The notes below the pieces were generated by a model. It made no database searches. It saw only the letters and a program-made list of their open reading frames with translations, and was not told where the DNA came from. 64,000 bases of DNA, taken from positions 17,174 to 81,173 of the forward strand of contig ADNK01001423.1 of the NCBI GenBank assembly GCA_000320545.1, given 5' to 3'. Position numbers and translations under genes: made by a program. Below are positions 3,994 through 52,510 of this stretch, in pieces (position 1 is the stretch's first letter; the number at the start of each line of letters is the position of its first letter). The stretch comes from Bigelowiella natans CCMP2755. Its lineage: Eukaryota > Protista > Cercozoa.

Positions 3994-4721
3994 GTTTAGG
4001 GCGCTGAAATATCTATGTAATAGGCATCCCCAACTCCCAGTCGTTCATCTAGAAAACGTCACCGATGAAATTCATCTTCAGATTAAGAAAGTTAAGATAT
4101 CTGGATGTGTAAAAATCCGAGTCTAAAATATCGTTGGTGAAGATGCTTCTATGAACTGAAATATGAAAGATATTCTCATCAACGTAACGTTCATATGCCA
4201 ACATTATGTGTAAAATAGAAATTCACAGATGTGCTGCCAACGTAAGATGGCGCTATACATTGCGTACCAAAGCAGGCCCATCAGTCATTTTTAAAACGAT
4301 GAGGTAGCGGCATTGCGGCGGCAACTTACTATTATTGCTATTTACATAAGTGTGCTGCGCTGCGAGTGCTACTACTCTTGTCGCCCTGCGGTAACTAAAT
4401 CTTTGCATGAATGCACACTTACACTAGGCAGCTTGAGTCTGTTTAGCTGTCTCCAATGCTTTGCATATCTGCATCTTATAGTCTTCGCGCTTTCTTTGCG
4501 TAATTGCTCATGCACAGCGCTAGACGAAGCGCCGACGCATGTGCTAGTATGTGACAAACATTACTAGATTATTATGATACAAATATCGGTCATGTAAGCT
4601 TGTCGAGCGCTACTTCACACCACTAGACTAGTAAACTACTGAAAAAATGCAGGAATATATTCCAGTAATTACTATCATGGATTTGCGCGTTTGAGTGTCT
4701 GTAGGCTTATATTATAGTCAT
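3994..4721. other. Convergent (tail-to-tail) spacer 1, SMC1 / RasGAP-PIPK; moderately CTAG/GCGC/CATG-rich core about 4250-4650
   Basis: Lies between the SMC1 stop (+) and the PIPK stop (-). Contains e.g. GCGCTAGACG, GCATGTGCTAG, CACTAGACTAG. This is the weakest example of the spacer class. Confidence 0.6.
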
Positions 4722-7700
4722 CTACTGGTTGCAAGCAGGTATAAAGTATTCCTTTACATAATCAAAAAGTAGTTTGCCGCAGTTGTTTGCGTCTGACAAA
4801 CTACTCTTTACCGGCCGGAAAATCACCATTTCAAATGCTGGGACACAAACCTTATCATTCGTTCGCCATAGGACTGGTGTTAAGGAGATTGTGTCGTAAG
4901 TAAAATAGCAACAATTGATTTTCACACTATGAACATGTACCTTTGGCGCTATTGCAGAATGTTGGTCTCCCTCCCATAGTATTGTACGCCTCCAAAAATT
5001 TTCAAGCTTTCTCTTCGTGTTGTACCTGGAAAGAAAACTCAGCTTGAAGATAGGAGAAAAAATTAACGTATTGAGGTTACTTACTCGCGCATTATATCAA
5101 TGATGCCTACGTAAACGACTCTCTTCCTCATTCTGCCCTTTCTTTCAACTGGTGTGCTAGGGATTCCATGGAAAATTGTCGATTCTCTCAATGTGCTATC
5201 GGCCATTCCACTAGATTTGGACCCCTACTCGTCGTTTAGAATCGAGTTGTTAACAATATAACACCATATTCCACCCCACCATCCCCATCATCACAATCAT
5301 CACGACGCATTCATTTACGGAGGTCCACTCACTGATTCATGTGATGTTGATGTTGATGATGATGATGATGAGGATGAGGATGATGATGATATCGAACAAA
5401 ATGATGATCACGAAATAGTATTTTTACTCTTAAGTTCTCTGATTCTTGCATCAGCTTTTGCTGTAGCCTAACAACAACATTCCATTATATCTTAGCTTGT
5501 AGCATTAGTACACTGAAAGAGATGGAATTTACCGCAAGCTCATCTTGTAGATAAGAGCACGTTGCTTACGCAGTCTGATACACAAATTATTAATAGGCTG
5601 CTGCTGAGTACGATGAGGTAAAGATTTTTATGGATTTATTGTGCACATACACGGAATTGTTTTGAAAGTCGTCCTCGTTCAGAGCCCAAACTTCCTGGTT
5701 GTTCAGTAGCCCGTAATGTCCATGGTGCTGTAGTATATAAACCATTCCAATAAGGACAGGATAGCGGAGGACCGGGACATACAAAATTTAGTGTAACGTG
5801 GCATTATGGATGATACCAATTTTGCTACGACTATATCTTCTTTTTCTTTATATTTTTCCTTACTCCGCTTTCTTCGAACAACTTTCGCTGTGACTCCATA
5901 GTACGTTCAACGTATACTCCCACAATAAGTCGGTATCCCTACCAGCACCATTATACCGGTGACCACCACTCAGATTAGAAATTAGTAGCATGAGAAAAAC
6001 GACAACAAGGACACGTTGCTACATCGATGAAATTATACCTGAATCCGATGTTTAACTAGCCATTTGATATCGTTCTTTAGCTGTTGAACGACCTTACCAC
6101 CTGCATGGGCGAGTCGTAGCCCTTCATCCTGGAAGTCTCTGTCTTTGAGAACCTGCACTGCTTGCCTGTACCATGTTTCATTAAAAAAAATGACTCGCTC
6201 AAACTTTGTCATTATTAGAGGAAGAAACGAAAAACCATCATCAGCTTTTATAGCAGTAGTCTCACCGTCTCTCCATCTCAGAAGAAGTGCGGTCGCTTGT
6301 TGCTTTGAGGTCGTAACGACTGTGGAGAATCTGCTGTCCGTAACATACATTCGCCATGACAACCCAATAGCTTGTTTTTCCATGATATGTGATTTCATAC
6401 ATGCCCAGGATTCTTGCAAGGAGTGAATCTTTGTTGTCGCGCACATGCTGGTAATACGGTTTCAGAAGAGAAAGAAAGTATTTAAACTCTGTTTCAGACT
6501 GGTTCTTAATGATAAATCGTTTATCATACGTGTAAATGAAAGCTCCTCCACTCTTTTTGCTGTGAACAATGTCGGCGTAAGGTAAGTTAATGGCCAGTGA
6601 CACCATTATTTGCTCCATCAATACACCGAAGACGTTCTGTAGCTTCATAAATATCATTGGCGCATGTGCAAGTACTACGTAATTAGAACGTTGTCCACTC
6701 TCTGCCTCTTCCTTGATTTTTTCCTCCACCATGTCAGAAGTTACACTCATTTTTGCTTCAAACTCACTGTCCTTTGTCCCCCTAGGAATATTTCTCTCCA
6801 AGCTCAAACTCACATATTCCATCCCAGATAATAGCATGAATATTTCTTGTAGTATCCTTGCTGTTCTATTGTTCTTCTGCTTAATTTCAGCTTCAGTGAT
6901 AAATATTCTCACTTTCCGTAAATTTCCCTCTCTTGATACTCCAGGCATCATATTTTTCTTCATATTTTCTCCCCCACCACCACCCCCATCATCATCATCA
7001 CCTCCTCCTTCTTTATCACAGGGTTGCTGCATTGTCCTCCCTTCCTCGGGAAGCAGTAGTAACAAGTACTGGCGTAAATCCTTTCGCATTTGGAGCAAGT
7101 GATATGAAGCTAGCTTGTTATTCTGATTGCTTTCCAAGTGCGAGAGATGTTCATCTGGTAGCCTGCAAAACTGTGCAAGATACATGTCCATTCTAGATCT
7201 TGCTCCTCTCAACCATGGATTCAAAAATGCTAGGTGGCTGGAAGAAGGATATAGTTTGTTATTGCTGGAAGTCATCAAAACTTTACACAGTAGCTTGATA
7301 TTCGTTCTCATAGCATCTCCTTCTAGAGCTTCCAAGACTCGTTGAGGGTTGTAGAAGCCGTTTTCTTCATCAGGAGCCTCAAGAAGGCCTGATGGATATA
7401 GTAATTTCGGGTTGAGAAGTCGGAGGAACACAAACCCACCGATCAGCCGCAACACACCCGAATCAACTCCATGCGAGCTTGTTCTTGGGGTTGCTGGGAC
7501 GGATTTTATACCAGTACTGTTGGTACTTCCTCTAGAAATCACCACATCGTCGTTTCTCATCTGCAGAATATTCGGTTTGAGGAAGCCTCCCCCCCCTTGC
7601 GTCGACGATCTTGGAGTAGTAGTAGCGTTTCCAGGTGGTGGAAACTTCTTACTCACAGCGGCGAATAAAGAGTTGACGACAAGCTGAAAATCTGAACTTC

Positions 7701-8742
7701 CCGAACCAGAATCTACTATGGCTGTAACCATCTTATCACACCATTGCAGCAATTCTTGCTGGTTGCGTTCTAAAATCTCTTTATCGCTCACCTTTTCCGG
7801 ATCTACTTCAAGAATCCGTGCTTCAACTGATGAATGTGCAGGGGTTAAAGATTGTGTGATATCAACTAAGAATGAGCTGAGACTGCGATTTAGGTGAGAC
7901 ATAGAATTCACCGCAGCACATAGAGCAAGCTCAGTCCCATACGACGTAGTTCTCAATGCACTTCCATGGGATTTTGCTTCATTTAATTCCTTCATAAGTT
8001 GACCGTATAGTAGTCGAACTCGCCAGGCAGGAGACAGCAAATTAATAAATGCTGCCACAGCATGTGGACGTATAAGATGTGGATCTCCAGATATCATATC
8101 AATCCTTTTCCTGTGTTGCATGGTGAGCACGCTCATTCGCACGTTTCTGCGGCCATGTTTTATTGACTTCCCCAGCATTCTGTTGATTGTCCATACTGCT
8201 GCCCAATCCTGTGCCATTTGTTGCAAGACGGCGTCTAATTTGCTCTCAGTTTCAGGTATGGAGGATGATTCTTCCAGAACCTTAAGCTCCTCGTGCGATG
8301 GGAGCGAAGAAGTCCGGTCTTTAAATTCTATATCTTGCTCCTCTTCAATTGCCATTAGAGGGTTGGTAAGCGACTTTTTGCCTTTCTCAACAGCAGAGTG
8401 TCGTTCAGATCCCTCTGCAAATCTACTACTATCCCCTTTCGCAGCCGACGATGATGATTCAGTAAAACCATGTTCATCATGATTCCACAAGCTTTCCTCA
8501 TCTACAATTTCAAATGAACTTGCTTCGATCCAGCGCGAAACCACTCCCTTGTAGATATCACTGTTCTTATCTTTTATCATCTCCTGAAGTTTTCTTGATA
8601 GTTCCAGGCAACTTTCCGCATTTCCCCCACTGTCTCCGGGAAGAACGTCGAGCACAAATGTTGTCGACTCCTCGCTATTATTGTTATTCAACGGCCCTCT
8701 ATGCTCACCATAAGAGGACGCAGATTTGTCGCGATTTTTCAT
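4722..8742 (-). CDS. RasGAP-domain + phosphatidylinositol-phosphate kinase (PIPK/PIP5K)-domain fusion protein; multi-exon, 5' end unresolved (may extend to about 9480)
   Basis: One open frame (6262-8742) carries RasGAP motifs (LIGGFVFLRLLNPKLLYP; NIKLLCKVLMTSSNN; HLAFLNPWL), then PIPK motifs (SKKSGGAFIYTYDKRFIIK; SLLARILGMY; VVMANV; HSRYDLKAT). Downstream minus-strand exons give VLKDRDF, QQLKNDIKWLVKHRIQ|GYRLIVGV, VYVGIIDIMRE|YNTKRKLENFL and a last exon ending PACNQ* at 4722. Confidence 0.88.
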
Positions 8743-9095
8743 ATGAAACTGTGATATGTCTTACAGGCCACAAGATTTATATAGACGCCTTGGTGCAGAT
8801 TCATTCAGGTACATCAGAAATGTGCTCAATATTGCCATGGATCTAACACTCCTCGGTGCGGTTCTTGTGATAATATGGAAGAGTGAATGTGTTTGAGTGC
8901 CCCCCAATGAGTTCGGATAGCAACATCCAGTACTTATTTAGTGCCAGCGGATAGGATGGCAATTTGACACCAATGGATACAAGTCATCAATTGTATCTAT
9001 CCTTCATCAATCCTATCTATCTATGTATTGTTGTGAATAACAAATGCTTTCCTACAGGACGAAGATGAAGTCTCCTCCTCTCCTCCTCCTCCTCC

Positions 9096-10707: not shown

Positions 10708-11762
10708 AATCAAATTAAGTTTTAATCTTCTCAAGAAATCCTGACATTTTGCAATTTTCATTTTATTGACTTCTTCTCATGAATTAATCAACTGTCATCA
10801 GCAAATTTTCCTGAGAAAATACGATTGGCATCAAATATTATAGGAATTTCCCAATAAATGTAACAAAAATGCAGCTGTCTTGTCTGGAAGCAGACTTGCA
10901 TGAGCGGCTACAGTCTGAGAATATAAGAAACAAGAAATGTGAAGTTAGGATAATTTGTTTTATTTTTAGTTGAAATGACTCAAAGGAGCTGCTGATTTCG
11001 CAGTCGTAGGACCCGCCATTATCGCCATGCTAGCATGTGCTGGAATTTCTCTAGTTCTGTTTGACCAATCTAGCAATGTTGAATTGTTACGAAGTGATAT
11101 CAAAGTGTACCATCATGTGGTTAAGGCAATGCTAGGATGGCTTATTTTCCCCAAGCCAACTTGTTCTCGATGTGCTCAATGCATGTGCACTCTAGCTAGC
11201 TTAGAGGCTATTCTTACATGCTAGCATGAACAATGTGTGAGATGTCTCTGTTGTGATGAGCTAGCTAGACACTGCGATGCATATATGCATCTAATATGGA
11301 ACGCCGTAGCGCACAATGAGATATTTGTGAACATTGCACGTGATTCACATCTAGCAGACATGCTAGCATGGCTAGATGGTAGCATAGGCGTAAAAGGTTT
11401 GTCGCATCACACCCTCTGATGATAGGCAGATAGGCCTAGAGAATGCAACGTAGATAGTGCCAACGATACTAGTAAGTATTCGCAGTATGGCATAACGCCA
11501 TAATCAGCTCGTCATGCTTATTCTAGTATTACATAGCAGCATCATATCCCCACATAATAAGCACACGCTAGCGTAGCATGCTAGCATGTTATGTGTTTAC
11601 ATCAATCAACGGGAAGACGAATATTCACGTCGGCAAATACATTCGTCTAGTCAATGCATACCAGTTTATCCACAAAGTAACGCACGGAACGTGCGTCCTA
11701 CTATCTAAAATAGGTGAACACGAAAAACGTCCATCTTCCTCAAAGATCTTTTCTGCTCGTTT
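10708..11762. repeat. Convergent spacer 2, kinase / hydrolase; palindrome-rich core about 10890-11660
   Basis: Four exact CATGCTAGCATG copies (11026, 11217, 11359, 11577), plus many CTAG, GCTAGC and TGCA words. No credible coding exons. Confidence 0.8.
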
Positions 11763-14028
11763 TTACACAACTGTTGAATGTTTTGTCGCTTTGCTCTCTC
11801 TTTCTTTCTTTCTCTCAACGCTATTTCGTTGCCAAATTCGGATGAGCTCTTCGTAGTTTCTCATAAATTCGCTGGGCAACTCCTCATGCGGAACATGCCC
11901 ACAACGCTTTATCCGACACACTCTGACTCCTTCTCCTGAACTCGTCGCTTTTTGCCCTTGCTTCTGCTCTATGGCATCACCACGTATTCGCTGGAGACTG
12001 GACTCGAGTCTCGTTGAGTTTGAGATCGGAACAATCTTGTCCTTCTCGCCGTGAATTATGCCGACAGGGCATGTTAGGCTGGCTAGATGTGCAGGACCGA
12101 TCTTGAGCGGCTCAGCGCGCGAAAGTTCTATAAGCGCTGCGTGCCAGTTTCGGACTTTGACCAGTTGCTGGTAGTGTTGAAGAGCCTCTTTGGGTATCTT
12201 CCTTTTGTCAAACCAAGCTTTTCGCAACACAAGCTCACCGATCTGTGAACGCACTAGCGCTACAAGGAGTTCCTTCATCACTGAGGTCCTTAGAACGTCG
12301 CGGATGAGCTTCGGAAATGGGTCCATAAAGACCATTGGTGAAATGAGCGTTAGCATTGATACCCTAGAAGGGTACAATGTAGCGGCGTAAACCGCCAGGC
12401 AACCTCCCATGCCATGTCCCACCATCCTGCAAGACGAGATGCCGAGTTTATCCAACACCGCGAATAACAACTGGCACGCATATTTCTGCGAAAACGGATT
12501 TGAGGCCATGCGAGCAGCACCGATCTGAAACAGTAGTTGTAATGGAAGAGGGAGGGTAGGAAAATTCGTCTTTAAATATCATCTTGGATGTGCTTGATCT
12601 TTGTGTTCCGAGCGATACGTGTAGTGAATGAGATGAGAATAGGGAGAATAAAAGGAATAATGGGAAGTGGAGCATGCAGTTTACAGCTGGATCATCTTTT
12701 TAAAATATAAGGTTCTACAATACCGCTCTCCTTGTGGTATTCGTTTCCTTTCTCATCTACGTATTACCGGTCTGCTTGTGAGGCCTGCACCAGGCATATC
12801 TAACGCCAGTAAACATGAGCAACCCTTCTGTAGTGGCTGCCAAACCTAAGAACCAGGACCCAGATAAAGCAGAAATATGTGGGAAAACCGAGGGAGGCCG
12901 TGACGAAGGACGATGGTTGATATTTTCAAACTAGGCTCGACACAGCACAAACGCACACATTTACATAATAATCAAAATCTCATATCATATGAGTTTATTG
13001 AAATTTCGTATTAGTAAAAATATAATTTTTATAGCAACCTCACGCCAAGTGTACGTGCTCCCTCCGAATCCGTGCAACAAAACTGTAGTAGCGGCAGAAG
13101 AACTGGTGTCATTCTTCGAGTCCTCCTCCATACCCTCGGCACGCCATAGCTTGTAGTGTAAACGCACATCCATAATATCCATAAACAAGCTATCACCATC
13201 TTTCAAGCTCTCCGGTTCAATACCTCCCCCGTCCTTAAAAGTATGTTCGGTCTCCACATAAGCCATGTGGTCCTGCTTTGCCTCTGCTCCAGGTGTTGGA
13301 ATAGACTTTTCACATTGGGAATTCTCTTCTCCGATCTCGATTTCAGCATCAGAATATTCATCACCGAGTTGCTGCATCCTTGTACCATCGCTTCCACCTT
13401 CGAAACCGAAATCAATACTTTTACCTTTAATCCGTCGCCTCCTGAAAGCAAGAAAGAGCACGATCTGTGCTACGCTTATGAGAACACCAAATAAAGCCAC
13501 CGCCACAGTGGCTGTCTCATTGTTTGCCCAAAGATACAGCAGCTTTACAAGCAAGTACATCACGCTGACGGCGAATGTAACGGAAGCAATGTGTAGTGCG
13601 CGCACAGTCTTGCTTCGATTATACTCAAAACACCAATACTGGATCGAAGCTCTAATAAGCGACAAAACCATCACATCAACCCCCGTGGTACCGAAGCTTC
13701 CAGAAAACTGCATGCTTGCCCAATTGTCATCCGCATCCCGAGCAAAACACCATAAGAATATAGTAATAAAAGGATCTACGATGCATGCGAGCCGTGGGAG
13801 CGAAATTCCAACTATTGAGCAGATACAGCACCAAAGGAACCAGCAGTGAGTCCCTGTGCGCTCGCAGCAACCATCCGCCTCACAGCAGCTCATTGTAGTA
13901 TCTATTTTCTTATTAAACGCTTCGTGGAATAATCCGCTAATGCCATCATCATTTTCATCGTTCTCTTTGTGGCGTGGAAGTGGTATTGGGGAGACAGGCT
14001 CGAATTTGTCTTGCCTCCTGTCGCTCAT
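11763..14028 (-). CDS. Membrane protein: N-terminal 4-helix (MENTAL-like) region + alpha/beta-hydrolase fold domain
   Basis: Exon 14028-13039 encodes hydrophobic helices then VLLHGFGGSTYTWRE. Exon about 12845-12770 gives VWQPLQKGCSCLLALDMPGAGLTSRP. The last exon (about 12525-11763) gives MVGHGMGG, IIHGEKDKIVP and CGHVPHEE. Junctions are GT-AG and in frame. Confidence 0.87.
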
Positions 14029-18567: not shown

Positions 18568-19502
18568 ACCATGTGCGCAACGAAACTTAATATCATCCTT
18601 GTTAATGAGCATTGTACATTTTCACTAAATTGGGCATGGTGAACTGGAGCGCCTTGAGTAGATCTAGATATTGCATAGCTACATTAGGATGACTATTGAA
18701 AAGATTTAATCATATCATTACATCCGTCTCATAATGTGCGCATGCGAAGAGAATTATCGAGCTTCGTAGGAGTACGCCGCGTACTCTTCTATCATCTATT
18801 CGGCAAAAGCTACGAGCGAGCATGGGCCTACATTTTGCGACATGCTAGCATGCTTCTCAGGCTGTTACGTTATTCATTAGACACTGCTAGCTCTCGCTGG
18901 CTGGCTTCTGGCTTGCATGGCTCACTACAACATGTCTTTTTGGTGCATGTGTGTGCATCGCTATATAGCTAGATCGCACAACAGCCCGTGCTCCGTTTGC
19001 CATGCTAGCATGGCTAGACAGGCTAGCAGCAGGCTGATTATGCTGAGGCTGGCGTGAGCATATTCGCCAAGTTCACATCACTTCTTCAAGCAGTGTAGCC
19101 ATGCTAGCATGTCTAGCAGATGCTGCACGTGCTTCATGCTGCTAGCTAGCTAGCTAGCATGCCCACAGCACAGCTTGGGCTGACGTACGCATGCTATCAT
19201 GCGCTTCCAGTCAAGCTAGCAATAGGCTCTATAGGATAGCTCTCATCTTGTCATTTATATTTGCTGCATGCTGCATGACAGACTGCGCCGATTTATATAA
19301 CATTTTGCAACGCAAGGCCACAGAGCGAGAGGCAGCTAGCGCGGATGATAGAAAAGCACGACTAGATGTGACATGCAATGCTAGAATGGCCACATTGCAA
19401 ATTACCGATGAATAATAGAAAGAATACGTGTGCGCACAAGCTGTGAATTATGTCTACTCGAGTGTGGACTCTTGGGCAAGCAAAGGTTGTCCATCGTTTC
19501 CT
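18568..19502. repeat. Convergent spacer 3, C2 protein / importin; palindrome-rich core about 18650-19390
   Basis: CATGCTAGCATG at 18841, 19001 and 19100. (GCTA)n run at about 19141-19158. Also holds copy 1 of the 57-bp dispersed repeat. Confidence 0.8.
18675..18732 (+). repeat. Dispersed repeat, copy 1 (about 57 bp; second copy at 33950-34006)
   Basis: ATAGCTACATTAGGATGACTATTGAAAAGATTTAATCATATCATTACATCCGTCTCAT aligns with ATAGCTACATTAGGATGACAATTGAAAAAATGTTATAATTTTATTACATCGTCTCAT. The first 19 nt are identical and the 3' end is conserved. Confidence 0.85.
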
Positions 19503-29091: not shown

Positions 29092-30033
29092 CCCCAAACC
29101 TATATGCAACTTGAAACTATAGACAGGTTCACATATGACGTGATGAATGTAGAATGTCGTTCGTTCGTACTGATAGTATTTGCAATGTTGGGACGCTACA
29201 TGCTCTGTATGTCACCAATGCTATTAAGCGATATCATAGATGAGTGGATCGTATCTTTCAAGCCTCGAAACTATACACAAGATGCGAATGCTGGCTCGCT
29301 GGTGGCTGATGATGGCGCCTTTTTTTATGCCATACCGGTGCCTAGTACGGGTATCATCGCTGGTCGGTTGCTGTTGCTGTTGTTGTGTCTACTTGCTTAG
29401 TTACGGTAGAGCGCATCAGATCTAGACAACAGAGAGGTGAACGGATTGTGTGATCATTTTTGACTGCCCATGCTATGTACATGTACAATTTGACCACATG
29501 CATCTATGCTCGACATCTAGACATCCTTGATATGCTTTCATGCACATGTGTGGAAATCAGCACACATGTGGCACATCTCTAGATCTAGACATGCACGTTT
29601 ATGTCTAGACGCATGCTATGATAGAATACGCACATAAAACACAGCTAGATAGCGCCGTGCGTAGTTGTTATGCTCTAGTGTTGAAGAATGTGGTGTAAGC
29701 GACAAGCATGCTAGCTAGCTAGCACTAGAGCATGGGTCGAGTCCGCTACACGCTAGCACGTGTGAAACATGGAAGATACTTTCGATCACAACACATTGCT
29801 GTCTATTAACATGTACTAGTGTACCATACGAACTCATTGACTGGTGCATGACGCTGCTGACACGGGGGGTGTCTAGGTGTGTCCGCATACATCTAGTCAT
29901 GATTTTTCTCAACGCTCTAATAACATGGTATCCGATGTATCTATATCTAGGTATAAACATGTTGGCGTGCATGGAATACATCGAACGATACACCTATTTG
30001 CCTTGTGTTTTTTGCGTATATGAACTACAGACA

Positions 30034-30090
<57 letters not shown>

Positions 30091-30449
30091 AAAAAGACAG
30101 CGTGCAAGATCTATCAAGCTACAATGACGAGCGCTAGCTAGCTAGAGCGTAGTATGGCAGATCCCTGATACGATCGTGGCATTGTTTCTAAAAGGAAAAA
30201 TTGTGTAACATGGGAGGCTTCCGCAACCCATCTTTATTCGCTCGAGTTCTTGGCGATGGGTCTATATGTACTTGCTAAATGGCGAAATTGCACATATTGT
30301 CTCTACTTCTGGGAACAGCCCAACAGCAGGGACGGTTAAGCTGCTGTGTTCATTAGACATTCACATCGGAACCACTGTGAAATATACCCTACTTTAGTTG
30401 CATCGATTCCTGTGCTTTGTGATGTCCTTTGTTTGCAATTTAGAGTTGG
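29092..30449. repeat. Convergent spacer 4, RAD50 / cold-shock protein; palindrome-rich core about 29400-30160
   Basis: Dense CATG/CTAG words (TCTAGATCTAGAC, GCATGCTAGCTAGCTAGCACTAG at about 29706, GCGCTAGCTAGCTAG at about 30131), with a (TA)n tract inside. Confidence 0.8.
30036..30087. repeat. (TA)n microsatellite
   Basis: Uninterrupted TA dinucleotide run of about 50 bp. Confidence 0.95.
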
Positions 30450-32660: not shown

Positions 32661-34048
32661 CCGTATTTGGTGTCACAGTTTTTGTATCTAGCGAAAATAA
32701 GCACCTCCCGACAATTGGATGCTACTAGCCCTGATAACAGTGGGGTGAATGTTATAGAGTTGTGCACGTGGATAACCGACAGCAGGAAGGTTGCTGGCTT
32801 GGTTAAATCTTATTCGCCGAATGTGCATGAATCGTGCACGAAGTTTTTTTTCAATATCATTTCGACTATTTATATCACTCGATCAAACTAACTATATGAA
32901 GTGTACACGTTGCTCCGGCAACTCTAGTTCATATACGTATTCTAACCTACCTACCTGTCGAATCATTTTGCTGAAGAATACTGCATTTAGAGGTGCCCAG
33001 TGCAACGTGCAGCCGTATTAGTGCAGAATGGCCATTAGTATAGATTACGCCTTATTTCGTAACGACTCAGCCGTCTACGCTAAGACATGTCTAGATGTAC
33101 TTGCATGCGGCCACGCGCTACACTGACCAAATTAACTTGCGTGCAGCCCACCATGCATGCACTGTAATAATTGAGGCACCTAGGCACGACTACGACGAAA
33201 GCACGATGCGTTTCAGGTCGTATCCTGTCGTCAATCACGAGCAGCATGCATAGCATGCAATGCCTTGTTCTTCGCAGTATTTGTTATTGTTTTTAGCTTG
33301 AGCAGCAACATGCACTTGAGTCATTAGTTGCGGCAACGATGCTCCTGCTTGTAGATGCGAGGCTCTAGCACTAGAGCATAGCTGCTGTGTCATTGTTCCG
33401 CACAGCAACATGCTAGCATGTACGCACAGCCTAGATTATGAACTTGCCTAGTGGGACAAAAGCTAGAGAAAGTACCGGCATACCGACATTAGTAGATCAC
33501 TAGATCAATCGATCCAGCTAGCCAGGCGAACATAGCAGTGCTAGAGTAGCTAGATTGCCCTAGCTAGCTAGCGCATCAACCTTAGTGCCAGCTAGCTAGA
33601 GCTAGACTGAGACGTATGTTTAAACATGCATGTCTGTACGGACTGAGTGGACTAATTCAGGCTGGCTATGCACAGCTAGACAGCTACATCTTAGCTCTAG
33701 ACACATGGCTAGCTAGATATAGGCAGGGCTACTCTAGTACCATAGCGTGGCATGCTCGCTGCGGCGTGCATTCACGTACGACGATGTGGCGTGCAACAAG
33801 AACACATAGCGCATAGCTGCAGCGGCATATACATGTCTAGATGTACCTAGCTTCTGTAGACGTACATGCTAGCATGTTGAGTACATAACTGATAACATAA
33901 ATAGCTCGCTAGCATATCTATACATGCATGCGCGGCTCTGCATAGCTAGATAGCTACATTAGGATGACAATTGAAAAAATGTTATAATTTTATTACATCG
34001 TCTCATGTATGCATCGCATAGCAGTGTAGTAGCCACACACGCTGCTAC

Positions 34049-34089
<41 letters not shown>

Positions 34090-34226
34090 CAAATGAACAC
34101 ATTAGTCTAGAAGTATATATCTAGATATGTGCTAGCGCTGGCCCAGACAATGTATGTATCAACTGACATCTTGACATTTTGTCGAAGTGAAAAGAAGCAA
34201 GATGCAACTGTTTTTGGGCAAATTAC
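32661..34226. repeat. Convergent spacer 5, CWC15 / sorting nexin; palindrome-rich core about 32980-34140
   Basis: CATGCTAGCATG at 33409 and 33865. ACATGTCTAGATGTAC occurs twice (about 33086 and 33832). (CTAG)n runs at about 33560-33605. Holds copy 2 of the 57-bp repeat. Confidence 0.8.
33950..34006 (+). repeat. Dispersed repeat, copy 2 (homologous to 18675-18732)
   Basis: Same-strand copy sharing ATAGCTACATTAGGATGAC...ATTGAAAA...ATTACATC(C)GTCTCAT. Confidence 0.85.
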
Positions 34227-35442: not shown

Positions 35443-35474
<32 letters not shown>

Positions 35475-36007: not shown

Positions 36008-36042
<35 letters not shown>

Positions 36043-36318: not shown

Positions 36319-36352
<34 letters not shown>

Positions 36353-36816
36353 GGTTTTGGTCATGCTAGCTGAGGAGGAGGAGGAGGAGGAGGGGGAACT
36401 TGCAGCCAAAAACGTCTTTGCTTTCTCACCTGTGAATGTACCCTTTTGTGCCACATGCACATATGTGAAACAATTAGTCTTTGGTAACTATTTTGGTTTG
36501 ATTTTAGTGATTTTCATCTTCCTTTCTACTTAAAAGAGTTCCCCTTATTCCCCCCCCCCCCCCCTCTCTCTCTCGATGTGTATGATTACGCGTTTTGCTT
36601 GCGTGGTGCATGCTGGATAATTAATTATATTATGATATCTTTCATCCTCACCATCACCTCAACATCTTACTGAAAATCACCATCATCATGGTGTTCATCA
36701 TATTCCGCTGCTATTCCTTACCTCCATCCGGAGAAATAGTCTCAGGAGAGGATCGGGTCTAACGATATTGGTGATGATGGACACACACACACACACACAC
36801 ACACACTTTTTTCATC

Positions 36817-36847
<31 letters not shown>

Positions 36848-36857
36848 CGCTGATTTG

Positions 36858-36890
<33 letters not shown>

Positions 36891-41860: not shown

Positions 41861-42074
41861 TATTTTACGTGTACAATTTTCACTCACTCTCCAATGTATT
41901 TTCACCTTTCGACAGATGCTGAACTTATACGAGGAAAGCGATTCTGTTTTGTGTGAGGCGGACATGGGTAGCAATCTTAAATATAAGGATCTTTTCTCAG
42001 AGAAGAATATCTCGCTTAAAGTAGCAGTCCCTGCCGATCGTAAGCAGTCCAAGAATTCAAAGCTAGATTCATAG
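39137..42074 (+). CDS. CCNQ: Cyclin Q (FAM58/cyclin M)-like transcriptional cyclin; many short exons, first exon not resolved
   Basis: Exons: KSVALIQEAGIRLEL; FYAKCSLKKYP; TAQTCLFLASKVEETSRRIR; YWQMKDTVVRHEQLVLRVLGFNMSSRHPHQYALHFLQDL; LAILTWSLLNDS; TTLCLQYKP|EPIACAAIYLA; WWHKFGTNRHEIEDICMQ|MLNLYEE...DS*. The YW-x-KD-x-VV-x-HE-x-LVLRVL-x-F motif fits cyclin Q better than cyclin K/L, from recollection. Confidence 0.8.
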
Positions 42075-42930
42075 CAGAACGAGATTCTGGTGGCAGCAGC
42101 AAGAGTCTAACATGAAAATGTTGCATTCTTTTTGTCGTAGCATGCACGAAAACAGTTGAGTAATTGATTTACATTTGCCTCTGGATACAGTCGACATTAG
42201 AGCAGGATACTAATAGCTTGCAATTTTCCTTCTCATTCATTGAAATAATTCGCCGAGACTCACGCCGCTAACATGCTGCACCATACTAGCATAGAATGCG
42301 TGCATATTTCACAACACACAATTAAAATGTGGCCAATGGGCGACCCTCTATTTCCGGCTCCTGACAACTGGCACTCACAAGCATCATAATTAATTGCGAT
42401 GGCTAGCACGCGTCGTAGCTCGTAAGGCAAGTTTGCATCGCATATGCGCAATTTGCAATAATACCAAGGCGCTATAGTTAGCTAGCTAGCTAGTTATTAG
42501 TCTCCTACGTACAGGCCTTATAATACGATGCCCGAATTAGATACAATAACGACATAGAAAACATTGTTTAAATGAGATATTGGCGTTGTTATCGCCAGCG
42601 GCAACACTTTAACTTAGCGCATCGTAGCAAGCAAGCAAATGTGAAGGCGCGTACGCTTAACACAAGCCGAGCTCGTCACGCGCGACGCCTTCTAGCCTCG
42701 CTAGCTCGCAGCTAAGAGCACGTTTGTTGCCATGCATGCAGCATCATCACAATGCAATGAGAGAAGCTAGGAATGTGGAAGCATCGATCGCGCATTGCCT
42801 TATCATATAAAATAAATGCACTTATGCAACGGAGTATTTTATCGAGCTACTACTAGTACAAGTACTACTACTAGTAGCAGAAACTAATTTGTTTCAGATA
42901 CAACTATCTCTGCTTAAGAATCAACTTTTA
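42075..42930. repeat. Convergent spacer 6, cyclin / SSL1; palindrome-rich core about 42260-42800
   Basis: GCTAGCACGCGT, AGCTAGCTAGCTAG (about 42480), CTAGCCTCGCTAGCTCG, GCCATGCATGC. No long trinucleotide runs in the core despite microsatellite-rich flanking genes. Confidence 0.72.
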
Positions 42931-43251
42931 CTACATCGTCATCGATAAACAACCTAACAACAAATCATTGCAATTAACGCCTTAGCGAAAACCCACAGCC
43001 ATGCCATAATTCGACAAACACAGGCAAAAACACACAAACGCATAATGGCTATGTCTCTTCTCTTACAATAATAATAATAATGATAATAATGGTAGCTTGA
43101 ATGACCTGGGCAGTTATGCAACGATTCGTGGATATATATGTCGCAGTCCACACAGAAGCGTTCATTGCACTGAGATTAGTAGGGGGGCTGCTATTAGGAT
43201 TTCATAACATACATAAAAAATAATATTACAAATAAAATAAAAATGTCCATG

Positions 43252-43289: not shown

Positions 43290-46115
43290 GCCTCTGTGTG
43301 ATATGTTTGTTTGGTTACCTTTGGACATCTTACAACCACACGTTCGAAAGTATTTAATTTTCGTTGGCAACCAAAACAATCTCCTTCCCAGAAATGATGG
43401 AGCAGCTCATTGTTTTCTTCTTCTTCGCCTTGTACCTTTTTTCCTTCTTTCTTGTTCAAAGATATACTATTATTTACGCTTCTCTTATCTGCTGCTACGC
43501 CATTCCCATCGGCCCCTCCTTCATCAATTTTTCCTTTAATCTTTCCTGTAGCTACTGCACTCTGAACATCATCGCGAAGAACGAGGAGGAGGAGGAGGAG
43601 GATCACACACCATCATCATAATCATCATCATCATCATCACTATGGTCATCCATGTCATCACTACTATACCAACGGAGGAACACACGACCGAGAATGAATC
43701 AAATAAGGAAAAGGGTGATTGATAATAAAGGGAAAATATAATGAGACTACTGGCTACGCGGGTTCTTCTTCTTCTTCTTCTTCTCCTCCCTCTCTTTCTT
43801 CTCCTCATTTTCTCCCAACCAACCAACTAAATCTTTCCTTTGCCATAACCACTACTATGACATTTACAAGATCTTGCTTATTCTTTTTCATATTCCTCCC
43901 CACATGCACACTACTACTACTACTACTACTACTACTATGTTCAAACTGCTATTCTTATTGATAGTACTTGCGGTAGAGAAGGACGAGGAGGAGGAGTCTT
44001 GTTTATTTCCACAAATTCATTCACAGGAAATAAGTGGTGGTAGCAACGGGCAAGATGTTGTGATGACACCTTATTATTATTATAATTCTTAATATCAATC
44101 TTCATTCTTGATTCGTTCAGAAGAGGATATCACGGGTAATAACATGACTCAGGAGATTCAATTGACATATGACGATGATGATGATGATGATGATGATTGA
44201 TGATGAGGATGATGCTTCTGCAGCAGGACATATATGGCACGAAACAAGAGCAAGAAAGGACAAAGATAGAATCATCGGTGAGAACAGTTCAAGTGATGAT
44301 GATAGCAGCGTAAAAATTTTATTTGAGATTATCATACATGACGATAACGACAAGTGATAGCGTAAACATTTTCATTGAGATTATGATACATGACGATGAC
44401 ACAAGAACAACAAACAACACAGGGATAATGTAAGAAACAAATGCTGATAAAAAATGTCTTCTTCTTCTTCTTATTATTATTTCTTTTCTTGTTACGAGTG
44501 TTCTTCCGCAGATGTGGCAAGTTGTCGGCAATTCGCACGACTTCGATTTGCATTTTGGACAAAAATAGCCGGTGTAACTGAACTCATCGTGGCACTGATA
44601 GTAGTAGTAGAAGTAGCAGGAGCAGCAGTAGTAGTAGTAGTAGTAATAGTAGCAGAAGTAGCGTTGAAAATATTAGAATCAACATCATCATCACAATCAT
44701 GTGCGGTATTGCGGCATGATAATATCTGTTGTAGCAGTAGCAATTCTACTGGATAAAGCTTACACTGCATAGGGTCGGGTAGTTGGTAGTTTTCTTCCTT
44801 GGAAACCCCATTCGAATCCATTTCCTTAACTTTCGGCCAGTACCAGCGCCCTGAGTCAGTCACAGTCAGTGATTCGTTGCAATATACATCATGTTTGTTC
44901 TTTGAATACTACGAGATTATATGAATAGTTGTGGGGGAAAGAACAAAGTAGACCACGATACAAACTAAGAACAAAATAGATCACGATACAAACTAAAAGG
45001 GCAAAATCATCAATTAAATGATGCGAATGTTGATAGAGGAGCGGACGACTTTCCTACAGCGGAAGAGACACGATTCCTTTCTCCCTCCTCTCTATCTTCT
45101 TCGTGATTATTATTCGTGATAATCTCTTCCATGCACTACTCCAAGATGTATAATCCTTCTTCATCTGTCTTCTACCTGTTGGTTGGTAGAGGAAATCTCG
45201 ATTCCAAATGGCTTTACATGTGCAAGTACACAGTCCTCGTAGCAGTTGTCCGAAGAAGTCTGGCTGCTCTTTCTCACGACGTCGTAGCGACCTAGTAGTA
45301 GTAGTAGCAGTGATAGTGAGACATAACACATATCATATTCATTCATCACCACTATGAGATCAGAGAGATGGTACACCTACCAGCTCCTCCCTACACTGCT
45401 ACATCTACAGCAACTACATATTAATTCTAAATGTTATCATTATTGTTGTAAATTACTACCTTTTGTGCATTCAGTGAGCTTCTTACATACATGCATCTGC
45501 GCCGCAAGACCGATCACTGAGACTCTAACGAAAAGGAATTGGAACAATAATATTACATGTTAAAGAAAGAGAAAATGTCAATATTATTTACCATATATTC
45601 AATCTATCTTCTGCGTGAAGGGCGACGACGACACCGACGACGACAAGCTATTATCATTACAGGTGTCGTCGTAATTGATCATACATAGTCACACCACCAC
45701 CTTATCTTGTGTTCCTGTAGCGTCTTAAAGGTCTCAAAGATATTTCCAGGATCGCAAGTACTCAATGACCCCATCACGACCAGAATCTTTAATTAAATAA
45801 CGTTAGTACCAATACCACTGTTTTTTTCCATTTATTTTCACCGCCTCGTCCTTTCCCTTCTACAACAACTTATTTCTATTACCTCCCGACTGCCGTATGG
45901 AGGAATATGTCGCAACGATGCAATAGCACACTCAAGCGTATTCTGAAGTGAGAATTCTCCTCCGGAGTGCAAATAGCCTTTGGTGACTCGCTTTAGATTC
46001 AAGAGTTGCTGTGTTGGATTTCCAGAGAGCTCAGTGATCTTGTGCGCTATCCTGTCACATCCAATCACAAGGCCTGGCAGTACAAAATTAATCACGGGAC
46101 TATAACAACTCGCAA

Positions 46116-46148
<33 letters not shown>

Positions 46149-46880
46149 GAAGTTTGTTCATATTATTATTCTTTATAGAATTAAGTACTACCTAGCTGAG
46201 AGATAGGGTTTTGGTTGAAGTACTCCTTAATAAACTTGCTAATAACTTTCTCGGTCGCAAGCTTCCTCGTCGGCTTTAAGTCTCGTGAATTCATAGCTAA
46301 TCATGAATAATGCATAGATTGAGTACATATAAGGAATGCACGTCTGTACTTCATCAACTAACGGTTTATTGACTTTTCTTTCACGAGTAGAATCAGCGAA
46401 CAACCACACTACTCACCTTTTGAAAAGTCAAGAATGATCGTGAGGTATCTGACCATTCCTTTCTCTACGTTCTCTAGTCGTGATATCTTCATCCTATTTG
46501 AAACCATCCATCGTGACCAATCCAACCACCCACACACACGCACAAGCGGCCATTGTTATAAATTTGAAGGGATGTTAAATAATATAATTTAAGCATAACG
46601 AGGGAACACAATCAATTGCAGATTCTAGCTGTACACATACATACCTCTTCCTCTTCTCGCGATCGATGCTGATCTGCCTCGCCTTCAGCTCTCCTTTGCG
46701 GCTCTCTGGGACGTTCTCCCATGTCCGTTCAAGGTCGCGCTCCCATGCGTGATTATCCTCCTTAGTCAGCATACAAGCTTCAATATTGAGCCAGAACGTA
46801 GTATGATCGTTTAGCTGTTATTATTACCTCAACATCCGAGTCTATAAGATCTACGAAGTTCTTGTGGAACTCCGTTGGGT
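42931..46880 (-). CDS. GTF2H2: TFIIH subunit p44 (GTF2H2/SSL1); multi-exon, first exon(s) unresolved upstream
   Basis: HAWERDLERTWENV; MVRYLTIILDFSK|AMNSRDLKPTR...KEYFNQNPISQLG; KITELSGNP; GEFSLQNTL...HIPPYGSRE|ILVVMGSLSTCDPGNIF (vWA domain); CKSKSCELPTTCHICGRTLV; CFGCQ; FCVDCDIYIHESLHNCPG|CLSMTM*. Confidence 0.93.
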
Positions 46881-47914
46881 TGTTGAACTTCGTTGAAGGA
46901 AGGAAGGAAGGAAGGAAGGAAGGAAGGGGAGAAAAGGTTAATGATAATGCTTATAGCACGAGCATCAGTATAAGTAAGGATGAGACTGCACACTTGCTGC
47001 TCTACTAGGAACTGCCTGTCCTTTCCTCTCTTCTCAGTGGGGTGGTGGATTGTGCCCTTTCTCTCTTTTCATTTTTTGTGTTCGGGGTCATGGATTGTTC
47101 CCTTTCTTCCTTTTATTTTTGTGTTTGATCTAAATTATTTGGTGAAACGATAATGTTTCTCCTCTCGCATGCATACAACGCTGCTACTTAAAAGCATTAA
47201 AAACTTCTTCGTCACTTCGTATCTGTCAGCCCCCTTGCCGTCTGCCCCGTGCTGATCCATCATTCCACTCTTCGTGTCCAAGAAACCTCTACGTCTTTAC
47301 TTAAGCCGTCTTTGCCTAAGTTTTGCATGTAGCTCTGAGAGTTTGAAGTGTTTACCGAGTTAAAAATTCTGCCACTTGTCAGGTTAGAAGGAGAGTCCGT
47401 CCCTAGTTATTTTCATGATGCAGAAGGTCTCAACATACCATTCTTGCGAAATTCGTATTGTGGGTGTGTTGATGAATTCTCTGGTTTCAATAGGCGTCGG
47501 GTTACTCCATTTGTTCGTAGAGGAGAATGGAAAATGTTCAAGGACAGCCGTCGTGAACTTATTGTTGTTGTTGTTGTTGTTAGTTATTCTGTTCGTCCTT
47601 GTTGTTGTTGTTGTCGTTGTCGTTGTTGTTGTTGCTGTTGTTTCTATTAGGTTTCAAAATAATGTTGAAGATTTCCTAGGATTTCCTACCAAAGAATGTG
47701 CCTCTGTCTGCCGGTTCTGCTAGCTGCTGTTGCTGCTATTTTCCCCCACACACACACCACTGTGTAGGTAGGTACTCCTAGTAGTAGTAGTAGTAGATCT
47801 AGTAGTAGTAGTAGTAGTAGTAGTAGCACGCAGATCTACTACTTGCTGTGTGTTCTTCTCCTTTCTTTTTGGCTCACAACACAACTTCTGTCGTCACCAT
47901 TTACTACTTCGAAT

Positions 47915-48030
47915 CTCACAACAATGTATGATGTCGTTCCCATCAAATCAATGGGGATTTCCTGCCCTCACAACAATGTATGATGTCGTTCCCATCAAAT
48001 CAAAGGGGATTTCCTAGGATTTCCTGCCCT
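47915..48030. repeat. Tandem duplication with 52-bp period (2 copies)
   Basis: CTCACAACAATGTATGATGTCGTTCCCATCAAATCAA(T/A)GGGGATTTCCT starts at 47915 and again at 47967. Confidence 0.9.
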
Positions 48031-48734: not shown

Positions 48735-49750
48735 CATAGATATGGGAGGACTTTTAAAATTTTCATTTTAGATGCTATACACCAGATGACCAACTGCATC
48801 CATACTATAATTAGATGCTACCCACCAGCATGACCAACTGCGTCCATACTATAATTAGATGCTACCCATCAGCATGACCAACTGCATCCATACTATAATT
48901 AGGCAAGTCGCGGACACGCGACTTTGCAAGGGATTTGGTGCGATGGCATGTTAAAAAGAAACATCTTCGTGGCGATGATATCGACGTGAAAAAGGAGGTA
49001 GCTAGCTAGCACAGGGTGGTGCAAGGGGGGAGGATAAGGAGGAAGAAGGGAAGTAGTAAAAGGTGGTAGTGACGGAATTAACAAAATATTCATTCTAAAT
49101 CGATGATGGGGTTCTTCTCGTATCCTGTTGGTAAAAAAATGAGCGGCCAACCGCAGTATCCAGTCGCTACAACCTAGTCATTCTAGCTGCACTCCCTAAT
49201 AATGCTGAGATGTACATCTCGGTTGATCTCAAAATTTACAACTTCCACATACTACATACATCTAGGTTTATCGGATAATCAATTTCTTCGACGTGGGTAG
49301 AGAGGGTAGAATTTATAAAGGAGCTCTTTTAACGCAAGTGGGAGGACAGGTGCTGCTGAACTACAACTTTAACCACACTTACAACCGTCGGAGGACTCAA
49401 CACGTTCTACAGGCAACAATGCATGTAAGAGTAGTAGTAGTAGTAGTAGTAATGTGATCTGAGCTGCTCGCTGATGATGACAACTAACTAAAATTTGGAT
49501 GATGAATCAATCACTAGAATGCTTCGTTGAGGCTACTACTACTACTATTACTTTGAATTTCTTATACTGCTGCTGTGATTGGGTATTTATTATTATGAAA
49601 TAACAGGACATATTAGGGAAAAAGGAGGTGGAGATTATTCTCTCTTACACGCAAGAATGGGGACACCACAAGGGAGCCTATATCGGGTGGGTGGGTTGTT
49701 GCCTAATTTTCGCCGACGTGCATGTTTGAATTCATTCTCTATTATTTAGA

Positions 49751-50756: not shown

Positions 50757-50763
50757 TTCCACA

Positions 50764-50805
<42 letters not shown>

Positions 50806-51320
50806 CCTTGTTCCATTTATACTTCATCATGTACAGAGAGTAAGGGTATTAATATTGTTATCGATTATTATTATTATCACTACTACCACCGTCACAGGTA
50901 ACACCATCTTCACGAACTGATGACCCAACACCATTCCCCGAGCCGCTGCAGGCAGCACAGGCAGTACAAGTCCAAAAGCACCACCACCAGCAACAAAAGC
51001 AGCGTGAGCCATCACGTTGGTCTTAGTGAAAAACAAGAAGAAGAACACTATATTATAGGTCAGTAGTAGTACTAGCAATATCATTATGTGTGATTGTACA
51101 TACTTTGTAGTAGTAGTAGTAGTAGTAGTAGTAGCGAATAATGTGTAATTTCTTTGGCTAGAACACCTTAGACTTCTTCACTGTTTTTCTGTAATCTTGC
51201 TTTTAGGTTCTTCTTCCACATAGGATTGTGCATCAACATGAAGATTATCTTGGAAAAATAGCACACAGCAGACACGAATCAACAGTAATAACACTAGTCG
51301 ATATCCTGGGCATTACTTAG
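48463..51320 (+). CDS. Hypothetical protein with N-myristoylation-type start and degenerate EF-hand-like motifs; 3' exons tentative
   Basis: Exon 48463-48598 MGAGSSSSSEGWKG...ILMDLYKAYARTDHI. Exon from 48903 GKSRTRDFARDLVRWH...DVKKE. Exon from about 49266 VYRIINFFDVGREGRIYKGALL. These first three exons join in frame at GT-AG. Later exons and the stop at 51320 are guesses. Confidence 0.5.
48769..48902. repeat. Minisatellite, 3 copies of a 43-44-bp unit, inside an intron
   Basis: TAGATGCTACCCACCAGCATGACCAACTGCATCCATACTATAAT-type unit at 48769, 48812 and 48856, directly abutting with no spacers. Confidence 0.93.
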
Positions 51321-52510
51321 CTTTCCACTTGAGTCGTTAATTTTGTGCGTGCGCTGAATCAATTTCACACATGTTTTGTAATGAACACTAAGTTCTCCGC
51401 AGCCAGAACAACCGCTTCTATGCCATGTAATAGTTCCTGCAGTGATATTTGAGCAATCGATAGTCGGACATATGATGCAAAGATGCAATTAGGCTATCTA
51501 CCCATTTCTCTAGCTCGAACGTGCAAGGCACACAGCTCAGCTCCCCATAGACCTTAGACGACATACAGCCGTCGCCCACGCTCTAGCTAGCTAGCTAGCA
51601 TGGTACATAGTACGTAGTCTAGCTAGCTAGGTAGCAGTAGCGAAACTTACCAAGCACTAGAGCAATGTAGCAATGTTAGAATGGCTAGATGCGATAAACA
51701 TGTGGAATGTGCTGAGCTGGTGTTGACTCTGTTAGATCTCTAGATCTGGACATCGTTGAGCGGCACGCCGTCTCAGCTGTGAGCTCTGTAGCTAGCTAGA
51801 GCTGCACATGAAAGGCGAGAGCGAGAATAAGCTGGGCAGGCTAGCAGACAGGCTAGGCTACTAGGCTAGCTAGCTAGCTAGTCTAGTCTGGTGCGTAGTA
51901 GTGGGCAAGCTAGGCTGGTGTAGTCTAGTAGTGGACCGCTTTGCGTGTTGTCATGCATGCAACAGTTTTCGGTCCTCTTGTTAGGCATGCATGCTAGCAT
52001 GCGTCATGCACATGCGTCTAGACGTGCTAGGCCTGGGGCCACTCTAGCACTGCCAATGCACAGTTCTAGAGCTGTCTAACTGAGTTGCGATGTCATTTTG
52101 TTTGCGCCTTCTGGCTAGCTGGTGGTGGGCAAGCCTTCAGACCCGTGATCATCAAAATGTCCAGATGTGCATGCCTGTGCGCATGCGCATGTTCTAGTGT
52201 TGGCCTAGCTAGCTAGTCTAGTAGTGGCATGCATTCGATCGGTGTGCGATGCTCATGCAAAGTCTAGACGCATAGCATGTGCATGTCTAGACGCCGTGCT
52301 AGCGTGTGCTAGCTTGTGCTAGCTTGTGAGACACATGCATGTGAGCGCGGTGCAATGGCAATAACTAGATAAATGGCATTGCATTGTGACGCTGTTATAG
52401 TCTAGCACGCACGTGCACCGGCTTGCGCAACAAAAGGTTGTTGTACATGGAGTAAGTCGTACTGTTAAGCAATAATGATGTGTAATTTTAGTGGAAAACG
52501 CCCATGATGG
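51321..52510. repeat. Convergent spacer 7, orphan gene / TRAPPC10; strongest palindrome-rich core about 51500-52420
   Basis: (CTAG)n runs at about 51585, 51618, 51866 and 52205. CATGCTAGCATG at 51990. Repeated GTCTAGACG and GCATGC. No long trinucleotide microsatellites in the core. Confidence 0.8.

Follow-up and report, generated by a model that had tools for sequence, protein, structure and literature searches.

What occupies the spacers in which two genes of the cercozoan Bigelowiella natans run toward each other? The stretch of DNA analyzed here (the window; 64,000 nucleotides of strain CCMP2755, contig ADNK01001423.1 of assembly GCA_000320545.1, positions 17,174 to 81,173 of the forward strand) has a G+C content of 41.5% and a eukaryotic gene content that includes SMC, RasGAP-PIP5K, protein kinase, importin-11 and Rad50 genes. 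An original prediction, made from its letters and open reading frames (ORFs), held that all seven tail-to-tail spacers of its central part, and no other region, share a sequence type dense in self-complementary words. Analysis of these seven blocks (B1 to B7) reveals a recurrent insertion of 8 bp, consisting of the tetranucleotide CTAG and a second copy of the adjoining 4 bp, which leaves the signature XXXX-CTAG-XXXX, where XXXX is the same 4 bp on both sides (hereafter, a scar). The scars are probably the excision footprints of a cut-and-paste element, and the blocks additionally carry a CATG-rich background that is not reproduced by the scars alone.

Seven CTAG- and CATG-rich blocks

Counting CTAG plus CATG in 500-bp and 200-bp windows along the stretch produces peaks at 4351-4750, 10851-11750, 18551-19500, 29301-30300, 33001-34300, 41951-42900 and 51401-52700, the same seven places at which palindrome-dense cores had been predicted, with B1 and B6 being weak. 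The blocks are 0.5-1.2 kb long (n = 7) and have no strand; their extent, CTAG content and number of scars with perfectly matching flanks are as follows.

4250..4750, no strand: B1, weak; 6 CTAG, 1 perfect and 3 one-mismatch scars
10851..11700, no strand: B2; 18 CTAG, 8 perfect scars
18600..19450, no strand: B3; 17 CTAG, 5 perfect scars
29350..30200, no strand: B4; 19 CTAG, 11 perfect scars
33000..34200, no strand: B5; 31 CTAG, 12 perfect scars
42000..42900, no strand: B6, moderate; 11 CTAG, 3 perfect scars
51480..52450, no strand: B7, strongest; 41 CTAG, 16 perfect scars

No other region of the window reaches the density of the blocks: the maximum outside them is 5 CTAG plus CATG per 200-bp window, and head-to-head spacers and introns are free of the texture, in agreement with the prediction. 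Compared with all remaining sequence of the window, per base, the blocks are enriched 11.6-fold in CTAG (143 copies vs 116 outside), 4.7-fold in CATG (97 vs 195), 66-fold in GCTAGC (52 vs 7), 16-fold in GCATGC (23 vs 13) and 12-fold in TCTAGA (16 vs 12), and perfect palindromes of at least 10 nt occur at 9.5 per kb in the blocks vs 0.9 per kb outside. Against a first-order Markov expectation, only CTAG (3.8-fold) and CATG (2-fold) are in excess. The proposed vocabulary of the blocks has to be trimmed accordingly: CTAG, CATG, GCTAGC, GCATGC and TCTAGA are enriched, but TGCA and AGCT show no excess over the prediction from the dinucleotide content of the blocks.

The blocks are not simple tandem repeats, as had been noted, given that Tandem Repeats Finder (TRF) detects a single array inside any block, a 33-bp one at 52296-52328 in B7. 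An all-against-all blastn comparison of the seven blocks, a check proposed together with the prediction, gave no consensus and no alignable core, the only matches being short motifs, (TA)n and a 58-bp element that B3 and B5 have in common; thus, the blocks mostly do not align end to end, and for this reason a dispersed repeat or transposon family was rejected as their source. No ORF or protein remnant was found inside the blocks. Tracts of (TA)n adjoin B4, B5, B6 and B7.

A stereotyped CTAG scar

Perfect direct repeats of 4 bp flank 55 of the 143 CTAGs in the blocks, and at 26 more, three of the four positions match. Outside the blocks, none of the 116 CTAGs has perfect 4-bp flanks and five match at three of four positions, which is the chance level, so that all scars of the window fall in the seven blocks, with none in introns or other spacers. 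Dinucleotide-preserving shuffles yield 0.005-0.07 scars per block vs the observed 1, 8, 5, 11, 12, 3 and 16 in B1 to B7, respectively. The expected number is about 0.9 when derived from the 4-mer frequencies of the blocks and 6.5 when the observed flanks are randomly re-paired; as a control, 760 kb of unrelated metagenome DNA contains 13 XXXX-CTAG-XXXX 12-mers. The effect is limited to one core and one length. No flanking-repeat effect is seen around CATG, TGCA, AGCT, GATC, GTAC or TTAA, or for repeats of 3, 5 or 6 bp, and the match between the flanks stops at the fourth base. A second type of scar centred on CATG was accordingly rejected, the flanks of CATG matching at the chance level. The flanks are direct rather than inverted (e.g., TTCT-CTAG-TTCT, CAAT-CTAG-CAAT and TGTA-CTAG-TGTA), which rules out palindrome growth through hairpin or snap-back formation.

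The favourite targets among 56 events are CATG (11 times) and CTAG (9 times); 32 events involve other targets, so the scars are not copies of one dispersed 12-mer. By position, the targets carry A or C in 34 of 43 cases, A or T in 32 of 43, and then G or T in 33 of 43. This palindromic preference (A/C, A/T, any base, G/T, abbreviated M-W-W-K) is expected of a symmetric enzyme. Characteristic examples, including two cases of nested scars, are listed below.

11026..11037, no strand: CATG-CTAG-CATG, the commonest scar type, 10 copies in the window, a 12-nt palindrome
11047..11058, no strand: TTCT-CTAG-TTCT, a scar with a non-palindromic target, flanks direct, not inverted
11359..11379, no strand: nested scars in B2, CATG-CTAG-CATG overlapped by ATGG-CTAG-ATGG
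29709..29732, no strand: nested scars in B4, a (CTAG)3 array, then AGCA-CTAG-AGCA

Some of the scars appear in a decayed form: nine differ from CTAG by one step in the core, at 4.7 times the density outside the blocks, and 58% of the mismatches in the 26 one-mismatch scars are transitions. From the distributions of flank matches inside and outside the blocks, the number of in-block CTAGs recognizable as scars is estimated at about 90 of 143. A scar in a target of the form C..G produces G-CTAG-C, one in a target A..T produces T-CTAG-A, and one in CATG produces a 12-nt palindrome; the CTAG words of the blocks (CTAG, GCTAGC, TCTAGA, AGCT and CATGCTAGCATG) derive from this stereotyped 8-bp insertion, to which the majority of the palindromes originally noticed can be attributed. 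There is little doubt that XXXX-CTAG-XXXX is the signature of a transposition-type scar in the blocks.

The runs of (CTAG)2-5 and (CATG)2 in the blocks, together with the raised base identity at lags 4 and 8, could also be taken to indicate cryptic microsatellites, i.e., (CTAG)n and (CATG)n units that slip and are altered by point mutation. However, slippage cannot yield direct-repeat flanks with targets besides CATG and CTAG, such as those of the 32 events mentioned above, and TRF reports no notable arrays in the blocks. The diversity of the flanks contradicts this explanation, which is extremely improbable.

Probable excision footprints of a cut-and-paste element

A palindromic target that is directly duplicated over 4 bp points to a symmetric enzyme that makes a 4-bp staggered cut, with the gaps subsequently filled, and a constant tetranucleotide between the two copies points to the remainder of an inserted element that has departed. 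The scars combine a direct repeat of fixed length, a constant residue and a palindromic target preference, and taken as a whole, the reading of them as excision footprints of a cut-and-paste element appears probable, if by no means assured. According to this scheme, a cut-and-paste element, or a transposase-like nuclease, would integrate via a 4-bp staggered cut, and upon departure of the element, the two filled-in copies of the target would be united with the outermost nucleotides of the element between them. The ends could be CT...AG, CTA...TAG annealed at TA, or a cohesive CTAG overhang, all of which would give XXXX-CTAG-XXXX, and repeated cycles would write GCTAGC, TCTAGA, CATGCTAGCATG and (CTAG)n. 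The confinement to converging junctions might result from directed integration, in response to a chromatin or termination-linked cue, or from selective loss elsewhere in a gene-dense genome.

If the scars are excision footprints, they record hundreds of rounds of transposition per 64 kb, every one of them directed to a single class of intergenic sites. A protist DNA transposon of this kind would clearly exemplify position-specific targeting or the use of a safe haven, and the scheme would predict an element with 4-bp duplications and CTAG-compatible ends. Among the options that the original prediction had entertained, a decayed element family surviving only at such sites comes nearest: the transposition-type scars agree with it, but the blocks share no alignable element. 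The remark that no standard feature class names the texture is no longer valid for the CTAG part, which is named by target-site duplication plus footprint; it holds for the CATG/GCATGC/TGCA part and for the restriction to converging junctions, which that class leaves unexplained.

Several observations weigh against the footprint reading. End-joining repair does not usually leave so uniform a footprint. The 195 CATGs outside the blocks carry no scar, so that local sequence preference is insufficient to account for the location. An intact element that combines CT...AG ends with inverted termini and a 4-bp duplication is absent from the 64-kb window: the matches of a search for a 4-bp repeat plus CT...AG plus inverted termini (12 of 14 positions matching, 30-12,000 bp apart) were rejected as artefacts built from the scars themselves, and a general repeat search of the window for the element was swamped by trinucleotide repeats. 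The scar at 11577-11588 is present and identical in transcripts of three samples, which excludes an assembly artefact and shows no presence/absence polymorphism. Furthermore, when the perfect scars are removed, the blocks still contain 15 CATG and 3.4 GCATGC per kb. A simulation of growth by scars only, with the observed target preference, runs into (CTAG)n, gives 1-3 CATG per kb vs the observed 16 per kb, and generates neither a CpA/TpG excess nor an alternation of purines and pyrimidines, which led us to reject such growth as the sole cause of the texture. Finally, the 21 de novo indels of a published mutation-accumulation experiment over 3,132 generations include no CTAG scar (bioRxiv 10.64898/2026.01.13.699255), giving no sign of current scar activity on that time scale.

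The de novo insertions recorded in the same work mostly end in ACA (GACA, CAACA, ACA, TGTTTGTAACA, ACACA, TACGCGCAACA and CATTACA), and one multinucleotide change is TGGC>AACA (Table S2, bioRxiv 10.64898/2026.01.13.699255). The ACA-ending insertions, which the preprint does not discuss, may reflect a templated or stereotyped insertion process. The preprint makes no mention of CTAG, footprints or converging spacers, and a literature search revealed no earlier description of CTAG scars or of the blocks.

Comparison with known systems

Among known systems, Tc1/mariner elements leave well-characterized excision footprints, namely TA-CA-TG-TA for Tc1 and TA-C(A/T)G-TA for Sleeping Beauty. Like the CTAG scars, these are short, stereotyped and often palindromic, with both target copies kept and 2-3 terminal nucleotides of each end left between them. 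The differences are that the Tc1/mariner duplication is a fixed TA whereas the CTAG scars duplicate a variable 4 bp with a palindromic preference, and that the latter are known here without a linked element or transposase. The Sola, Ginger and CMC-Chapaev superfamilies produce target duplications of 4 bp; the likeness is in the length of the duplication, and no member of these superfamilies was found in the window.

A topoisomerase is another potential source of 4-bp duplications. Topoisomerase II (Top2) makes breaks with a 4-bp stagger and is active at sites of supercoil accumulation between converging genes, and Top2-induced duplications of 2-4 bp are known from yeast top2 mutants and from the cancer indel signature ID17. 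The likeness to the scars is that a 4-bp staggered break, when filled in and joined, duplicates 4 bp; the difference is that the Top2 products are plain tandem duplications without a constant insert. More generally, a host process could write the scars, with a domesticated transposase or another nuclease making 4-bp staggered breaks where converging transcription stalls and repair leaving the duplication plus CTAG. The exactness of the 4-bp duplication, the extreme uniformity of the scars, their strict confinement to converging junctions and the lack of an element in the window all fit this proposal. However, fill-in of a 4-bp break gives XXXXXXXX without an insert, and such tandem 4-mers are seen for CTAG and CATG only, which also led us to reject plain 4-bp tandem duplication as an alternative footprint; furthermore, no repair route is known to add a constant CTAG. 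A host origin of the scars is therefore considered unlikely.

Limitation to one class of intergenic positions has counterparts in the directed, or safe-haven, integration of Ty5 into heterochromatin and of the Dictyostelium TRE elements beside tRNA genes. In these cases, as in the blocks, the traces of mobile elements are limited to a single position class; unlike the situation in B. natans, where only 8-bp scars are found and the class is that of converging junctions, Ty5 and TRE are retroelements that stay in place.

The piggyBac elements use TTAA targets and 4-nt staggered cuts, and their excision is seamless (PMC7351741). They resemble the proposed system in the 4-nt stagger and in a self-complementary tetranucleotide that can rejoin as cohesive ends, a type of joining that would explain the uniformity of the CTAG scar. 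In piggyBac, however, the target is the tetranucleotide itself and excision leaves no residue, whereas in the scars the target varies and CTAG is additional.

Texture beyond the scars and TpA hypermutation

Apart from the scars, the blocks have a distinct composition, with dinucleotide rho values of 1.86 for GpC, 0.51 for CC/GG, 0.76 for AA/TT and 1.33 for CpA/TpG. Identical neighbouring bases make up 16.7% of the steps in the blocks vs 27% in head-to-head spacers, and the purine/pyrimidine alternation is 0.59 vs 0.48, respectively. The excess of CATG, GCATGC and TGCA, the scarcity of homodinucleotides and the alternation of purines and pyrimidines constitute a separate background that is not generated by scars alone.

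A process that could contribute to this background is the TpA>CpA/TpG hypermutation of integrated viral DNA that has been described in B. natans, with thresholds of TpA rho of at most 0.43 and CpA+TpG rho of at least 1.52 per 1-kb window (Mettrop et al. 2026, bioRxiv 10.64898/2026.01.13.699255). In the blocks, TpA rho is 1.0-1.4 and CpA+TpG rho is 1.1-1.4, and none of them meets the thresholds. The sole stretch that does, provided that CTAG is set aside, lies in B7.

51951..52350, no strand: TpA-poor island in B7; 4 non-CTAG TpA vs 21.8 expected, 16 CTAG, CpA+TpG rho 1.70, 53% G+C

Within this island, at about 52161, there is a scar with a CCAG core (ATGT-CCAG-ATGT), as if the scar itself had been hit.

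It could be proposed that the blocks as a whole are decayed foreign or repeated DNA that was subject to this hypermutation, with CTAG spared or added later. The process is documented in the same organism (Mettrop et al. 2026), the island bears its signature, (TA)n adjoins B4-B7, and CpA+TpG rho is 1.3-1.4 in most blocks vs 1.15 in the window. Nevertheless, the blocks outside the island show no shortage of non-CTAG TpA (rho about 0.83 vs 0.81 elsewhere). Moreover, random conversion of TA units predicts equal numbers of CATG, TGCA, CACA and TGTG but the respective counts are 97, 78, 45 and 48. Hypermutation cannot make 4-bp direct repeats around CTAG, and, as indicated above, the blocks contain no ORF or protein remnant. 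As an account of the blocks, this explanation thus has a rather low probability; nonetheless, part of the non-scar texture may come from TpA>CpA/TpG hypermutation, in view of the signature at 51951-52350. The published 1-kb thresholds would miss the blocks because the scars restore TpA. The scar reading separates the texture of the blocks from the hypermutation known in B. natans, which is detected by a window-based screen.

The only real homology between blocks, identified by blastn, is the 58-bp element, which is present in two of the seven.

18675..18732, plus strand: 58-bp element, copy 1 (B3); 86% identity to the B5 copy, same orientation
33950..34006, plus strand: 58-bp element, copy 2 (B5)

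This element contains GACGGATGTAATGA on the minus strand. Its predicted fold is not significant (z-scores between -0.7 and -1.3), it matches nothing in Rfam, and a metagenome scan with a 14-mer derived from it returned chance matches only.

Transcript ends at the blocks

Transcript contigs from three samples of the Joint Genome Institute (JGI)/Marine Microbial Eukaryote Transcriptome Sequencing Project (MMETSP), which are 99.7-99.9% identical to the window, make it possible to place the blocks relative to mRNA ends. Exact look-ups of the window ORFs matched transcripts for the abhydrolase and Rad50 genes only.

11569..11766, minus strand: 3' untranslated region (3'UTR) of the abhydrolase gene, containing the scar at 11577-11588; transcripts L121-L125
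24689..29295, plus strand: Rad50 mRNA, 7 exons, introns of 46-63 nt; contig L001 aligned to the window

In all three samples, the poly(A) tail of the abhydrolase mRNA is added at 11569 (minus strand), inside B2 and within a CTAG, after ...GCTACGCT(A). The Rad50 contig, which lacks a poly(A) tail, breaks off at 29295, some 125 nt short of the first CTAG in B4, so that the true end is at 29295 or beyond. One poly(A) site is thus placed inside a block, B2, and the Rad50 contig, which stops before B4, adds no second one. The single mapped site at 11569 shows that the outer rim of the block is transcribed and that the region between the two poly(A) sites contains most of the scars. In the favoured reading, the blocks take in the distal parts of the 3'UTRs of the converging genes. 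The pentanucleotide TGTAA occurs about 30 nt upstream of the 11569 site (a single case); it was rejected as a poly(A) signal because its occurrence is inconsistent: of 11 known stop codons, about 5 are followed by it.

These data bear on the possibility that the blocks are selected zones of bidirectional termination or 3'-end processing, in which palindromes read alike in both transcripts and the scars are incidental or serve as raw material. The cleavage within a CTAG inside B2, the end of the Rad50 contig just before B4, the presence of blocks only where two 3' ends meet, and the CATG and GCATGC enrichment that the scars do not explain are all compatible with this function. On the other side, no shared motif is found at a fixed distance from the stop codons or the poly(A) site, and the blocks are unalignable; the texture is missing from the same-strand spacers at 55-62 kb, in which 3' ends are present as well; and the scars start 200-400 bp past the stop codons, mostly beyond the mapped 3'UTR (one poly(A) site is mapped). 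Selection for termination as the origin of the blocks is accordingly deemed improbable, and the conserved terminator, boundary or modification motif that the original prediction had envisaged finds no support, given that there is neither an alignable element nor a motif at a fixed place. A combined scenario, in which a system acting specifically between converging poly(A) sites (an active element with a targeting module linked to chromatin or termination, or a domesticated transposase) makes repeated cuts with a 4-bp stagger and writes the CTAG scars, and in which the resulting palindrome-rich, stop-codon-dense DNA is co-opted as a spacer or terminator, is speculative and has a low chance of being correct.

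The abhydrolase gene (11569-14538, minus strand; L121, L122 and L125) is represented by three transcript forms, one with 12526-12767 unspliced, one spliced, and one spliced with an additional 80-nt exon (12768-12847), which correspond to products of 347, 263, 215 and 609 residues in the collection. The 5' part of L123 (L123:1-1330) does not map to the window and is joined at a (GAG)n tract; this contig, in which there is also a run of N, was probably assembled as a chimera.

Flanking genes and their orientation

The orientation of the flanking genes was deduced from Pfam domains, transcript contigs and ORFs. For B1-B5, converging neighbours on both sides are verified by Pfam or transcript evidence. 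B1 is flanked by SMC (plus strand) on the left and RasGAP-PIP5K (minus strand) on the right; the RasGAP and PIP5K domains are encoded in a single reading frame (4722-8760, minus strand). The neighbours of B2 are a protein kinase gene (plus strand) on the left and the abhydrolase gene (minus strand) on the right, whose transcript runs from 14538 to 11569 and whose ORF at 12988-14028 belongs to a 90% cluster with the B. natans protein jgi/Bigna1/88417. B3 lies between a plus-strand gene (16060-18564) and importin-11 (minus strand), B4 between Rad50 (plus strand) and a minus-strand gene with a cold-shock domain (CSD, at 30453-30623), and B5 between Cwc15 (plus strand, 32086-32367) and a minus-strand gene at 34230-38300.

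The remaining two blocks are less completely framed. To the right of B6 lies the minus-strand gene for TFIIH p44/SSL1, with the C-terminal zinc finger C1_4 at 42957-43175 and the Ssl1 domain at 45841-46191; the position of C1_4 implies that the 3' end of this gene faces B6. On the left side, there are a Cyclin_N domain (plus strand, 39660-39896) and a plus-strand ORF that ends at 42071, so that the left neighbour is probably on the plus strand and B6 probably lies between converging genes. For B7, the converging arrangement is shown on the right side only, by the minus-strand gene at 52514-55381. On the left, protein searches reveal no real relative of the minus-strand ORF at 50830-51177, no protein domain is recognizable on either strand at 47-51.4 kb, and four sense TGTAA motifs on the plus strand (51144-51426) are a weak hint of a plus-strand gene. 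Codon and Markov coding scores lacked the sensitivity needed to orient genes at 38-52 kb, and the conservation of intron boundaries was too weak for strand assignment. Thus, the claim that all seven spacers are tail-to-tail is verified for B1-B5, probable for B6 and documented on one side for B7, and the position-specific, strand-symmetric character attributed to the blocks holds up, as they are confined to converging junctions as far as they can be oriented. Neither the head-to-head spacers of the window nor the spacers at 55-62 kb that appear to separate same-strand (tandem) genes contain a block.

Five short tandem repeats, with repeat units of 28-52 bp, are located in and beside the TFIIH p44 gene region, at 44307-44405, 44939-44996, 47039-47125, 47915-48015 and 48768-48902.

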